From Adineta vaga (taxonomy: Eukaryota > Animalia > Rotifera): DNA of 64,000 nt. Below are positions 38,826 through 48,416 of the stretch, piece by piece. The stretch covers positions 9,982,001-10,046,000 of the forward strand of contig CP075493.1 in NCBI GenBank assembly GCA_021613535.1, read 5' to 3'. The translations under genes were made by a program, and so were the position numbers. Position 1 is the first letter of the stretch; each line of letters begins with the position of its first letter. The notes below the pieces were generated by a model, which was given only the letters and a program-made list of their open reading frames with translations, was not told the DNA's origin and did no database searches.

Positions 38826-40414
38826 TTAAAGTTTAACTTGAAATTGTACAGCATTCGTCGTACTATTCGAAGGATTGAAAAGTGCTTGACGAATAAATGC
38901 TGGATCAATAGCCATCTTGTTTGAACTTGATTGTGATGTTTCATTTTTGATCGCTGAGGATGAACTATATAGGAGTGAAAAACAAAATGAAAGAACTGAT
39001 GAGTGTCGTTATCTTACACGTTGCCCTTTGTTGTCACTGATTTGGAATGTTGTGACGAGACAGTTTTCGATGATTTGGTTGAGTAAGATATTGGCTGTTG
39101 AAGACTAACATACATTAATTGTCCATCTAATAATCGATTGTGGTATTTAGCAACTGAATCTTCAGCCTGTTCACGGTTTGCATAGATTATCTGTATACAA
39201 CCACGACTTAATGTTTTAATGTCATTAATATCACCAACTTCGCTAAATAATTCCTAGAGAAGTCAATGATATATTTATAAATTATCTTAATTTAAAACAA
39301 ACGGAAAGAAATCACACATACGATGATGTCATCTTCAGTAACGGTCGATCGAAGATTAGTTATTAGAATGATTGTTTCATCAGAATTTGAACGTGTTGAC
39401 GAAGTTGCTTTTGGCTAAAAAAAACCAGATTTAATCAACCAATGAAATGATGTAAATAGTAGAAATTACTTGTGTGCTACCAAATGCGTCTGTTGAAGTT
39501 CGTTTGAGAGAACTTTTTGGTGATGATGTGGTTGAAATTGGTAGTCCCATATCTGTTGTTGTATTTCGAGAAGTGGTACGTTTTGTTGGAGGTTCGTACT
39601 CATCATCTAAATATTTACGAGTTGAATTAGTTCGAATTGGTGATCGTGATGAAGTGGATGCGTGTGTGGTTTGAGCAGAAGTACTATGTAAACGTCGAAT
39701 AGTTGGTGGTGGTGTTGGCGATTTCGGTCGTTTCCGATATTGATCATTAACAAAACTAATAACCACTTTTTGATCAGATAAATTTGGTTGAGTGTTCAAA
39801 GTTTGAGAATGACGATTGTTGTCTTCATCACGAGCACGTGTAGTATTCTTTATTGTCTTGAAAAAGATGAAGAAATAGAATGAGTTATTTTCAAGAAATG
39901 AGAAATAGGAAAAAATCTATACTTACTTTAGTAAAAGAAATTGGTTCAGTTAACTGATTATTGCGCGTATTGAGAAAACTAGGTCGATTCGAAAGTCCCG
40001 ATGTTAACTATAGAATGAAAAGAAATTCTTTCACACAAATATATCTGTATTTATACTTACACGACCATCATTTGATCTGGTAATAAACAAAGCTTTTTGT
40101 TTTCCAATAACGGGTAGTTCCTCTTCCTCTTCCTCATAATCGTCTTCTTCTTCTTCAATTTCTACGGCATTCTGTCGAATTGGTAAAGAAGTATTTTGTA
40201 TTTTCGATGATTGTCGGCTGAGCAGTTGTCGAGCATCAAAGACTGGTTTATTTCGATTGCCTAATAATTGTCGTGCATCAGTGATGGTAGGAGTTGTTGG
40301 TGCACTAAGACGACCATGTACATTTTTATTATTAGCTGTTGGCTTACTAAGTCTTTTCAAAGCACTGATTCGATTATTACCATTATCTGCCGTCGTTTTT
40401 AATGACATTTTCAT
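38826..40414 (-). CDS. POLDIP3: POLDIP3/SKAR-like RRM protein
   Basis: N-terminal DARQLL repeats, C-terminal RRM (ITNLRSTVTEDDI.ELFSEVG...YHNRLLDGQ), end IRQALF...FQVKL*. Confidence 0.78.
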
Positions 40415-40609
40415 TCTAAATCTTGCTTATAATACTAATGAAACTTTAATCTAGATTGAGAATCAAACTGTAGTAACAAAATTAGAAGAATAGAAAAGAA
40501 AACAGTAGGAATATCTCTTCGAGAATATATTTAATGATTTAAATAATAAAAAGAAAAAGAATGAATCTCATGTAACTAACATCACAATATGATGATCTTT
40601 TTTTATGAA

Positions 40610-42465
40610 TTATTTATAAAATTCAAAGTCTTGTTCATTTTTCTTCACGACATTTTTATATGCTTTTTCAAAATCTTTTGCTAAGACAATATAACGATTT
40701 TCGCGTACAGCTTGCATACCAGCCTAAATATATAGTAAAATCGATGACATGAATTTTCATAAAACAAATACACATACTTCTTGACAAATAGAATTAATAT
40801 CAGCTCCTGAGATTCGATCAGGACGTGCAATATAATCTTCTAAATCAACTTCATCACTTAAATTCATTTTACCCGTAACAGTTGAAAATACGAGACGTTT
40901 TTGTCGTCGATCAGGTAAAGGAAATTCAATTTTACGATCTAAACGACCAGGACGAAGAAGAGCTGGATCAAGTGTATCAGCACGATTTGTTGCCATGATA
41001 ACCTAATATGTTCAAAAGTTATTGAATCTTCCTATATTTCTTCATCATCGTATGTCTTACTTTAACATTAATACTTTGATCGAAACCATCCATTTGATTC
41101 AGTAATTCAAGTAAAATACGTTGTACTTCACGATCAGCTATTTGCAGAAGATTTTAGTGGTGTGAAAAGAAATGAAAAGATTTCAAATATAAACCTCCTG
41201 TTTGAGCATCGAAACGTTTTGTTGCAATGGCATCAATTTCATCAATAAAAATGATTGCAGGTGAATTTTCTACAAAACTATGCATAGAATTTATGAAAAA
41301 AATGGACATTATTTTCATACCCTTGGCAAGACGAAATACATCTCGAACCATTCGAGGACCTTCACCAAGATATTTTTGAACAAATTCTGAACCAACGACT
41401 CGAATAAATGATGCTAAAACAGCAAAATAGTCCGATACAAATAATTAAAACAAGAACTAAATCGAACCAGTAGTATGCCGAGCAACAGCTTTAGCTAACA
41501 TTGTTTTTCCACAACCTTTTAAAAAACAATAGAATTCTAGACTAAGTAATTAGTTCGATCAATAACGAACCAGGTGGACCATACATAAGTACACCACGTG
41601 GTGGATCAATACCAATCAGTTTATACAATTCTTTATACAATAAAAAAAATATATTGTTTTTATTTCGAATAAGAAAAACATACCGTAATGTGTCAATGGT
41701 AATTCTACAGCTTCACGAATTTCTTGCTTTTGCAAATCTAATCCACCGATATCGGCATAATCAACATCCGGTTTTTCATCTAAAATGTACGGATGTAATC
41801 TTCCTGAAAATTGATAAATTATCTATTGTTACCTGCTTGTAACATCGAAATACTACTGTCTGATTCTGGTGGAAGAATATCGACAAGTGCATTTGAATGT
41901 TTATGCAAAGCAACACTAGCACCAGCTTTCAAAAGTTCTCGATCAATTGTTGATAAAATTCTAACATAATAGTTTGAACCTAAATGAAGATTATTCATAT
42001 GAGGAGATCTATTTTAAGATCTTTGCTTTTTTACCTGTAGTTGATCCAACAATTCCAGTATTTTGATCAACAGCTTCTAGAAATTGGCCAATAACAAGCG
42101 GTACACTTTGAATACGTTTAATTTCTTCTTGTGCATGTAGCATTTCTTTTTTTAAATTTTTCAATTCTGTTTTTACATATTCTTCTTGAACTTCCAAAAA
42201 TTCCAATTGACGTTGAAGTTTCTAAATCAAATAATGAATATTTAAATGGACTATTTCATCGAAAATCAAACCTTATATTTAGTATAGAGATCATCGCTAT
42301 CGAGTGATTCATATTGTGATGAAAGGACATAATTCTGTTGAGCATGTCGACTAAGATCTTCCTTCGAAAATAAAATGGTATAGTTAATCAAAATGAGAAA
42401 TCGAAATGATTGGTACATACTTCTTTATGTGTCACAACTGGCATATCTTCTACTAATGCAGTCAT
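40610..42465 (-). CDS. PSMC4: 26S proteasome AAA-ATPase subunit Rpt3
   Basis: [65 protein letters not shown]-terminal EFYK. About 10 introns. Confidence 0.97.
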
Positions 42466-42612
42466 ATCTGAAAATCTAAAATCATTTTTATATAAGAGAA
42501 GATATCATTCGCTATCCGTATTATTTTTCTTTCTTCAATCAAACAAAATAAAATAAAATGAACATCGGACTAGATAGAAGAAAATATATAAATAAACAAA
42601 TGGAAAAAAAAG

Positions 42613-46086: not shown

Positions 46087-46126
46087 CTAAAACAAGAAAC
46101 AAGAAATTCTTTTATTTTATTTTATT
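46087..46126 (-). promoter_or_regulatory. Intercistronic signals: triple AATAAA (46111-46126) then a pyrimidine tract and unpaired 3' splice site (AG 46087-46088)
   Basis: Minus strand reads TAA-AAG-AATAAAATAAAATAAAA-GAATTTCTTGTTTCTTGTTTTAG, upstream of the USP8 ATG. Confidence 0.6.
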
Positions 46127-46129
46127 CTT

Positions 46130-48416
46130 TTATGAATCCATTTTATCAGAATCTTCCATCGTCATGTCAGCGAGCATTTCATCAAGACCTATACGAGGAA
46201 TATCGGCATCTTCTTCGTCATCCACAGTATTCGATGCTTGATTAAGTTTTTTCTCGTCTAAAGGTAAACAAATTCTTGTCAAATTATAAAAGTTAATCAT
46301 CTGCTTTTACCTTTATAAACGTTAATATTCTGTCGTAGAACAGGATCTTCTTCGAGATCTTCAAGAAATTCTGTATAATCCCTACAAAAGATAAAGGATC
46401 GAGTACAATTGAAACTGATCTAAGAAATCTAACAAACCGTTCAATAGTACTGTTGACACTGGCCACATCTTCAACATCCATATGTTTCAATTTCCATTGA
46501 CGTCGTCGATTGCGAAGACTCTTATCTGCGTAAACTTTCTTGACAAGAATCTAAATGGATAAATTTACATAAGAGAGAAAAAAAGAAAACAAACTAACCA
46601 CATCGGCTAATTGTTCGAGATCATATTGATCTAAACTTGAATCGCTGACATTACTGTTCTGTAAGTCGAATCTATTTTCCGAAATAAAATAGATTTAAAT
46701 AATATTTCATCATAAATTGATCAACATACCCCATCACTGTATCACCCGGATGTAGAATATGACCAAGATGGCTAATTGTTGAATATTGTTTATCAACAAC
46801 ACCGATTTCAGATCCTTTCATTACATATACTTCAGCCAAAGCATGCTAGAATAAATTCATTTTATGTGTCTTATTCATTCTCAACAACTATGGGTATTCA
46901 TTCAACCGACAAAAATCGATTCTACGATAATCTACTATAGGCAACTAAATCATTAATATCGATAGTAATCTTTTAATAATAATAACAATAGATTTAAAGT
47001 TCAAACCTTATGTGATTCTTTTCCATAGACATGTGGCTTAGAATCTGCATCGAGCACATTAACATCGCAAACAATGTATTCAACTAGATGTTTTGAATCA
47101 CATAGAGCAGTAAATGGTGATCGCCAATAATCATTCGATGAGATCGGTGCAACTACAATTGCATTTTAGATTAAAAAAACGAATTATATTTATATCTTAA
47201 TCTTACCCTTTAATGTTTTTGGATCAATTAAATAGATATTTTGTGTAACACGTGAACAGATACACATTGGACCAATATTACCTAATTGTTTCGATTGTTT
47301 TTTCGATAAACAAACAATATCATCCTAGAACATTGACGAACTCTTCCTATTAATCTCATTATCTTCTCCTTCTTACTTTACAAACAGGTACAATTTCCAC
47401 AAGCGTTGTATATTTATAATTATAAATATTACTATGAATATCATGGGAAATCAACCGTTTAGATGTTTCAAATCTAAACAAAAACTTGCGTTGAGTTTTT
47501 GATAAGAAAAAATAAAAAGATGAACTACCTGCATGGTACAACACACATAAGAAAATCAACTAATTTTCTTGCACTGTTTTGTTCTGCAAAATAGAAATCT
47601 AATCCACCATATACTTGTTTGATATTCGATGCATCAGAATGAGCATTATGTTTTAATAATAACTGTTCAAGATACAAGAAAGTTTTCTTATGTGAAGTCT
47701 AAGTTATAAAAAGAAAATTATCATAAATCATTTTCTCTGAAGAAATTGAATATAATCAACAAACTCGTTGTCGAACTTGTACAAGTGCTTTCCAATAATC
47801 TTTTGCTTCAATTCGTTGACAATCATCACATATTTGATTGAATATCGTGAATTCAACAATAAATGTTTGTTGAAGTATCGCACCTTGAGCTACTTCTTTT
47901 TGAACAGTTAATTTTACTTTAATACGTTTCGAATGAGGTTCAGTCCAAATAAAACCAGCATCAACTAACCGTACCTAGAAAATTCCATCAAACGATTGAC
48001 CAATTATTTCAAATAATGACTATTTACTTCTTTATTTAAACCTTTGATACGTTTTAAACAAACAGTTAATAATTCTCGAGATTCCAATTGTGCACTTATC
48101 CATGTATTCGGTGGTTGAAGATAACTTTTTTCAAAAATAAACAAAATTAGTAAGAAAACGATCGAACTATCAAACATACCGAATGCATTTGTTACACATT
48201 TGTAGTTGACCTTGTTTAGGAATTAGTTCGGTGATGTCAATTTGAGTTTGCATACATCCATTACACATATTAAGTGTATTTGGTTCAATAAGAACTCCAC
48301 ATTGACAACATAAACTAAAAGTAAAGACGATATTAAAAATCAATATGATTGTGATAGTATACACACATTTTTCCTGCTGTAGTTGTTGGTTCGATACTAT
48401 CGGTTATATATTCCAT
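46130..48416 (-). CDS. NMD3: 60S ribosomal export adaptor NMD3
   Basis: CCQCG..IEPN..NMC..C, FIWTEPHSKRIKVKL, W.ALVQVRQ, HLGHIL.PGD, RRWKLK, acidic C-terminus with NES-like LDEMLADMTM. Confidence 0.95.

Follow-up and report, generated by a model that had tools for sequence, protein, structure and literature searches.

Four head-to-tail housekeeping genes of the bdelloid rotifer Adineta vaga with the layout of a spliced-leader operon

In tunicates (Ciona, Oikopleura), one spliced leader (SL) serves both single genes and genes in operons, housekeeping genes are enriched among the latter, and most cistrons are separated by very little sequence or none. In Caenorhabditis elegans, internal promoters occur in some operons (called "hybrid operons"), and the polyadenylation [poly(A)] signal of an upstream gene lies roughly 100 nt from the splice acceptor of the next one. 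Rotifers belong to Gnathifera, and their SL trans-splicing has been known since 2005; no operon-specific second leader is known in this phylum. Here, we analyzed a 64-kb stretch of the Adineta vaga genome (contig CP075493.1, positions 9,982,001-10,046,000; hereafter the window), in which four housekeeping genes, NMD3 > USP8 > PSMC4/Rpt3 > a gene for an RRM-domain protein, lie head to tail on the minus strand. On balance, the cluster probably represents, at least for NMD3 > USP8, an SL operon of the nematode, tunicate and chaetognath kind.

A study of Ciona reports both trans-splicing and operons in this animal (PMC1488885). For the chaetognath Paraspadella gotoi, operons were defined as genes less than 250 bp apart, at least one of which bears an SL; no operon-specific leader was found, the longest operon contains ubiquitin and proteasome genes, and chaetognaths are placed in the gnathiferan lineage (PMC12460157). 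The published rotifer leader is one 23-nt sequence (PMC3795323, Table 1). For rotifers, operons have the entry "not determined" in a table of one paper (PMC2481426) and are given as "not reported" in another (PMC7986045), and rotifers are named in passing, without data, among the lineages with trans-splicing and operonic transcription (PMC12460157). In the literature searched, the operon-like layout described below is not reported for rotifers.

The window (G+C content ~31%; short GT-AG introns) belongs to a genome of 100.8 Mb in six contigs. Among the proteins searched, its nearest relatives come from Adineta and Rotaria, as expected for a bdelloid of the genus Adineta. Exon chains were reconstructed by a shortest-intron path search, and domain searches were run separately for each exon. 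The cluster is composed of the following minus-strand genes: (i) NMD3, encoding the 60S export adaptor in ~12 exons (ATG at 48416, TAA at 46132-46130; orthologues of 506-509 amino acids); (ii) a USP8-type deubiquitinase gene (ATG at 46040, end at 42613; orthologues of 880-968 amino acids, 880-901 at the annotated orthologous loci); (iii) PSMC4/Rpt3, encoding the 26S proteasome regulatory subunit 6B (ATG at 42465, end at 40610; orthologue length 418 amino acids); and (iv) the RRM-domain protein gene (ATG at 40414, stop at 38826; orthologues of 391-424 amino acids). The genes are unrelated to one another, and each has an open GT-AG exon chain from ATG through stop, with a length matching that of annotated orthologues; our exon models are slightly longer because a few in-frame introns were kept. 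An AATAAA hexamer ~85 nt past the final stop codon (38738-38743) is the likely, predicted end of the unit.

Three of the gene names assigned in the initial annotation were borne out by domain or protein chain matches. NMD3 matches PF04981 within a single exon (1.7e-25), and its orthologues carry NMD3, NMD_SH3 and OB_NMD3 domains. Exons of USP8 match USP8_dimer (2.6e-11), UCH (9.9e-25) and Rhodanese (0.0028, below the cut-off), and its orthologues are listed with all three domains. PSMC4 matches proteasome subunit 6B chains (1.6e-29) and an AAA domain. The name POLDIP3, proposed for the fourth gene, was not confirmed: RRM_1 is listed on whole orthologues and is weak when searched by exon, and the remaining exons gave no specific PDB or Pfam match. 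No second copy of the cluster was found in the A. vaga genome, where NMD3 is single-copy and the nearest relatives of USP8 and the RRM gene, located elsewhere, are 49% identical.

The distances from stop to ATG are 89 bp (NMD3 to USP8; gap 1), 147 bp (USP8 to PSMC4; gap 2) and 195 bp (PSMC4 to the RRM gene; gap 3), exactly as first reported together with the four intact genes. All three are shorter than the spacing of about 250-1000 bp between same-strand genes that serves as a criterion for operons. The accompanying statement that most other genes lie ~1-3 kb apart holds only roughly, as the other distances between coding sequences are 0.26-2.1 kb in annotated orthologous loci.

The cluster was compared among A. 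vaga, A. steineri, A. ricciae, Rotaria socialis and Lx, a bdelloid common in metagenomes; gaps 2 and 3 and the region upstream of NMD3 were aligned in these five species, and gap 1 in seven bdelloids. The loci of the other bdelloids were reached through relatives of USP8 exon 1 and of full-length USP8. Order and strand are kept in A. steineri (gaps of 84, 135 and 166 bp), A. ricciae (94, 122 and 191 bp), R. socialis (72, 152 and about 199 bp) and Lx (111, 98 and 115 bp), and two additional, G+C-richer bdelloid contigs retain NMD3 > USP8, the two genes being about 90-95 nt apart. The gene order, which the initial annotation had put forward for comparison among rotifers, is thus shared by Adineta, Rotaria and Lx; in Didymodactylos carnosus, discussed below, it is not. 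Conservation is higher in the gaps than in the introns of these genes, with invariant columns across four species amounting to 0.43-0.51 vs. 0.28.

In every gap of every species keeping the cluster, a T-rich tract is followed by YAG and then by AT (YAG/AT, the slash marking the predicted junction) at aligned positions, while the surroundings drift. These acceptors have no donor able to pair with them; for the gaps of A. vaga, the initial annotation had noted the lack of an obvious upstream donor. The mere presence of so short a motif proves little, because TAGAT or CAGAT is expected ~0.3 times per 100 nt at the local composition (our estimate). In gap 1, a T/G-rich tract ends in the unpaired acceptor AG (46088-46087; whole element 46087-46106), and the predicted exon begins at 46086 with ATATAAAC; the element is conserved in seven species. 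The unpaired acceptor AG of gap 2 (TTTTAG/ATTTT; 42476-42477), kept in all five species, lies 10 nt before the PSMC4 ATG, and that of gap 3 (TCTAG/ATT; 40451-40452), located 36 nt ahead of the start codon of the RRM gene, is shared by A. vaga, A. steineri, A. ricciae and R. socialis and takes the form TTTTAG/ATTT in Lx. All motifs named in the initial annotation occur where they were placed, including the AG at 46087, the CAG at 42468, the CAG at 40468 and the AG at 40416, as well as three AATAAA hexamers (46126-46111) and ATTAAA (40535-40530). As acceptors they fared differently: the site at 46087 is the conserved one, the CAG at 42470-42468 is found in A. vaga only (the conserved site being 42476), and neither 40468 nor 40416 is kept across species, the conserved site of gap 3 being 40451.

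A comparable element precedes the first gene. An unpaired acceptor AG (48456-48455) lies 38 nt before the NMD3 ATG, behind TATAAATA (48475-48468) and a T tract (whole element 48455-48475; sequence and alignment), and all five species have YAG/ATT at a similar distance from the NMD3 start codon. The acceptor motif is absent at the neighboring filament, anoctamin and 7tm genes, and TATA-like boxes stand in its place in two of three filament orthologues. The anoctamin and filament-like genes form a plus-strand tandem of their own (window ~28500-37600; L021, 17691-23418), in which the genes lie 260-294 bp apart in three species. This gap does not appear operon-like, the filament gene having no acceptor motif and, in two of the three species, a TATA-like box.

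In all seven species, gap 1 reads stop, AATAAA block, GTTTTTGTTTTT-YAG/AT, 25-45 nt and ATG, and the A-rich AATAAA block, which in A. vaga comprises three overlapping hexamers (46111-46126) that are likely the NMD3 poly(A) signals, comes right past the stop codon. The acceptor follows the stop at a distance of 43 nt in A. vaga and 40-76 nt over the seven species, no donor is present at least 40 nt upstream of the acceptor inside the gap, and the shortest intron of our exon models is 42 nt. Because stop and AG are only 43 nt apart, a promoter, a 5' exon and an intron cannot fit between them. Poly(A) signals and the acceptor are the only elements recognized in gap 1, with no promoter motif.

Promoter-like sequences are concentrated upstream of NMD3. 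The five-species alignment revealed a block (48565-48611) containing CCAAT (48611-48607), ATTGG (48586-48582) and a second CCAAT (48569-48565). A. vaga, A. steineri, A. ricciae and Lx share ATTGG and the proximal CCAAT, R. socialis retains one CCAAT, and the distal CCAAT is confined to Adineta. The same region contains TGACTCA, an AP-1/antioxidant response element (ARE)-like site (48507-48513) that is invariant in A. vaga, A. steineri, A. ricciae and Lx and reads TGATTTA in R. socialis, together with a TGTTTGTTT string and the above-mentioned TATAAATA. No block of the CCAAT/ATTGG/TGACTCA type was found in the three gaps of the five-species alignment; it occurs only before NMD3. In other animals, Nrf1/SKN-1 activates proteasome genes via AP-1/ARE-type sites, and TGACTCA before NMD3 would be of interest if PSMC4 were transcribed from the NMD3 promoter.

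The genome contains the spliced-leader genes that such a unit would require. We found ~59 copies of the spliced-leader gene in A. vaga, each followed by a GT donor; none lies within the 64-kb window. Leader genes often form head-to-head pairs ~154 bp apart (e.g., L001; C1:2,551,160-2,551,336), and clusters of them occur on C5 around 9.88-9.93 Mb and 10.91-10.93 Mb. The main sequence class comprises 42 copies; the commonest change among the variants replaces C by A at position 10 (9 copies), and variants are often paired with a canonical copy. A metagenome scan with the pattern leader + AT + ATGRCNRCA gave 18 matches, only one of which is a true leader-bearing transcript, a bdelloid RPS3 mRNA; none comes from the locus studied here, and the remaining matches were dismissed as chance hits in unrelated contigs. 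The RPS3 transcript (L034, 1-42; JGI metagenome contig) retains the 13 3'-terminal nucleotides of the leader, with the junction at ATTCG..., which shows that the metagenome collection includes some rotifer transcripts, and the two RPS3 genes of A. vaga have TTTTAG/ATT or TTTTAG/ATC at the homologous position. The leader genes and this transcript agree with the statement of the initial annotation that SL trans-splicing is reported in bdelloids. At RPS3 the motif marks a proven leader acceptor, and in the gaps it is predicted to do the same.

A promoter-like conserved block before NMD3 alone would fit a single promoter and a polycistronic precursor, but gaps 2 and 3 also contain conserved blocks. 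According to the proposed mechanism, RNA polymerase II would start at the NMD3 promoter and transcribe through at least USP8, with read-through probably extending across PSMC4 and the RRM gene. Upstream mRNAs would be cleaved and polyadenylated within the gaps, the signal of gap 1 being the AATAAA array just past the stop codon. The GU/U-rich tract of this gap, located ~30 nt past the last AATAAA, would probably have two roles, serving the poly(A) site as its downstream element and the acceptor as its pyrimidine tract. The 22-23-nt rotifer leader would be trans-spliced at YAG/AT (AG at 46087, 42476 and 40451), its end (...ACTTACCAAGAG) joining at 46086, 42475 and 40450 (and at 48454 for NMD3), and the capped 5' end that every downstream mRNA would thereby receive would lie 10-46 nt ahead of its start codon. 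Internal promoters may be present as well in gaps 2 and 3, which would make the unit a "hybrid" operon. An SL operon is the likeliest reading of the cluster, firmest for NMD3 > USP8 and possibly hybrid further down. The broader proposal that bdelloids have true SL operons in which the GU/U-rich tract plays this dual role and the following AT distinguishes these acceptors from cis-splicing ones is more tentative, and we place it just short of probable.

The resemblance to C. elegans operons is close in several respects: unrelated housekeeping genes lie on the same strand at distances of ~100 nt, the gap contains a poly(A) signal for the gene before it (clearly so in gap 1), an unpaired acceptor precedes every downstream ATG, and an acceptor also precedes the first gene, like an SL1-type outron. 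In contrast to the nematode, the poly(A) signal of gap 1 is only ~30 nt from the acceptor, and the SL2 leader used on downstream genes of C. elegans is set against a single published rotifer leader (PMC3795323), with minor genomic variants; moreover, co-transcription is a prediction for the A. vaga cluster. Like tunicate operons, the cluster would combine one leader with housekeeping genes, whereas the bdelloid gaps are 72-199 nt long and contain conserved blocks. Chaetognath operons, likewise gnathiferan and likewise including ubiquitin and proteasome genes, differ in their leader sequences and are backed by genome-wide RNA data, whereas our description of the bdelloid cluster is confined to DNA sequence.

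The alternative that survives best is that the four genes are tightly packed and separately transcribed, PSMC4 and the RRM gene from compact promoters of their own in gaps 2 and 3 and USP8 from the 3' end of NMD3, the short gaps being a result of genome compaction; we regard this as less likely than the operon, yet as a serious rival. Its main basis lies in gaps 2 and 3. Gap 2 contains a block, TCTATCTAGTCCGAT (42564-42578), kept in A. vaga, A. steineri, A. ricciae and R. socialis, and a second one, GCGAATGAT (42504-42512), which all five species have 21-45 nt ahead of the acceptor and which may be a variant USP8 poly(A) signal or a PSMC4 promoter element. Gap 3 contains a 23-nt block, AAATATATTCTCGAAGAGATATT (40510-40533), containing AATATA and a TTCnnGAA core and identical in Adineta and Rotaria; this block may serve as internal promoter or regulatory site, or belong to a poly(A) region. 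TATA-like strings, AAATATAT and TATTTAAAT, are located ~75 nt before the gap-3 acceptor, and the nearby anoctamin-to-filament tandem shows that a likewise short gap (260-294 bp) occurs elsewhere in the neighborhood. Gap 1, however, offers neither room for a promoter nor a promoter motif, its 40-76 nt being taken up by AATAAA and the GU-rich tract, and CCAAT and TGACTCA are found before NMD3 only. The gap-3 block also does not behave as a recurrent promoter module: an 18-mer from it has 46 matches in the genome with up to two mismatches vs. 6 for the control, and its use as a genome-wide promoter module was rejected, as the other copies share no common context. In Lx, furthermore, gaps 2 and 3 are reduced to 98 and 115 nt and the gap-3 block is largely lost, with AATAAA retained ~30 nt before the acceptor. 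The 15-mer of gap 2 is not enriched in the genome (185 matches vs. 114 for the control). A stem-loop resembling the nematode Ur element was also considered for the gap-3 block and found no support (folding-energy z-scores of 0.13 to 1.43, and -1.24 for a larger piece).

Several observations weigh against the operon reading. The blocks of gaps 2 and 3, TATA-like strings included, are identical or nearly so in Adineta and Rotaria and could be internal promoters. The poly(A)-like strings of gap 2 are only AATGAT- or AATAAT-like, with no canonical AATAAA; in gap 3 the candidates are AATATA, ATTAAA and a signal that overlaps the stop codon. The flanking filament, anoctamin and Ig-domain genes are also syntenic between Adineta and Rotaria; conservation of order therefore extends beyond the four genes and lends the operon weak support. 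RNA-like sequencing runs contain about half of the region's sequence words, and protein look-ups and the metagenome scan yielded no leader-bearing or two-gene RNA contig for these genes. The only RNA-derived USP8 contig (L025, Logan) was set aside, since it begins with an Illumina adapter (1-20), 12 nt before the ATG, and holds no 5'-end information; the ends of such contigs therefore cannot be read as RNA ends. Logan matches of 132-133 amino acids were rejected as genomic DNA, and the full-length USP8 matches all come from genome annotation.

The arrangement in D. carnosus (L020, 1441-13993) adds to these points. The cluster is not kept there: PSMC4 and USP8 are on opposite strands 6.5 kb apart, PSMC4 being the upstream one, with a glycosyltransferase-43 gene between them, and PSMC4 starts 1.2 kb past another gene on its own strand. 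NMD3 was not found in the 10 kb upstream, and the contig ends 1.3 kb past USP8. The 3.5 kb before USP8 contain no open reading frame of at least 75 amino acids, no credible Pfam match and no annotated gene. Both genes nevertheless retain YAG/AT, preceded at USP8 by AATAAA ~20 nt upstream; an acceptor, and even an AATAAA-acceptor pair, therefore occurs without an upstream cistron. With USP8 and PSMC4 apart, no close annotated gene before them and the same acceptor in place, SL use needs no operon, as separate transcription would have it, and leader use is therefore independent of membership in the cluster. Judged from the genomic arrangement, leader use probably preceded gene packing or outlasted a break of the cluster, and the D. 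carnosus layout suggests that trans-spliced single genes were packed into an operon later. The 5' untranslated region that would follow the acceptor in D. carnosus starts with ATCGGAAACAG, resembling that of Lx (ATCGAACAG).

Taken together, the operon proposed in the initial annotation has in its favor the conserved layout, the unpaired acceptors, the presence of spliced-leader genes and a conserved promoter-like block that precedes NMD3 alone; the blocks of gaps 2 and 3 count against it, and the acceptor sites first named for these two gaps need correcting.

It is improbable that TAG/AT is instead an initiator-like transcription start, located ~20-30 nt past an A/T-rich box (AATAAA or TATAAA) and used with no spliced leader. 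An A/T-rich hexamer is indeed located 20-35 nt upstream at NMD3 (TATAAATA), in gap 1 (AATAAA) and in gap 2 of A. vaga (TATATAAAAA), as well as at D. carnosus USP8, which has no recognizable upstream gene. Such a box is, however, not conserved in gap 2 of A. ricciae, R. socialis and Lx, and in gap 3 none is conserved within 30 nt of the motif. As at 3' splice sites, the AG never varies and a T-rich tract stands before it in every case, and the RPS3 transcript has the leader joined exactly at the homologous site.

Cis-splicing of read-through transcripts at the gap acceptors, yielding fusion isoforms or isoforms with an intron in the 5' untranslated region, is highly improbable: the R. socialis annotation does join PSMC4 and the RRM gene into one product, but the two are annotated as separate genes in A. 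steineri and A. ricciae, every gene has its own conserved ATG and stop, and fused models are a common artefact of gene prediction among close genes. The fused R. socialis model (L023, 14790-18524; GCA_965120305.2; 844 amino acids) is likely such an annotation artefact of a very short gap, the other option being a trace of read-through RNA, and we counted it in favor of the operon reading.

The finding is relevant to annotation, as closely spaced genes become fused, as in the R. socialis model, and the locus supplies precise predicted acceptor positions and a candidate promoter. The role in recovery from arrest or desiccation suggested in the initial annotation is speculative, being drawn by analogy with published ideas about operons. 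A conserved operon in bdelloids, if true, would bring rotifers into the small group of animal phyla that have polycistronic transcription and would bear on the number of operon origins; because chaetognaths, also gnathiferans, have operons, it would reopen the question of a single gnathiferan origin.

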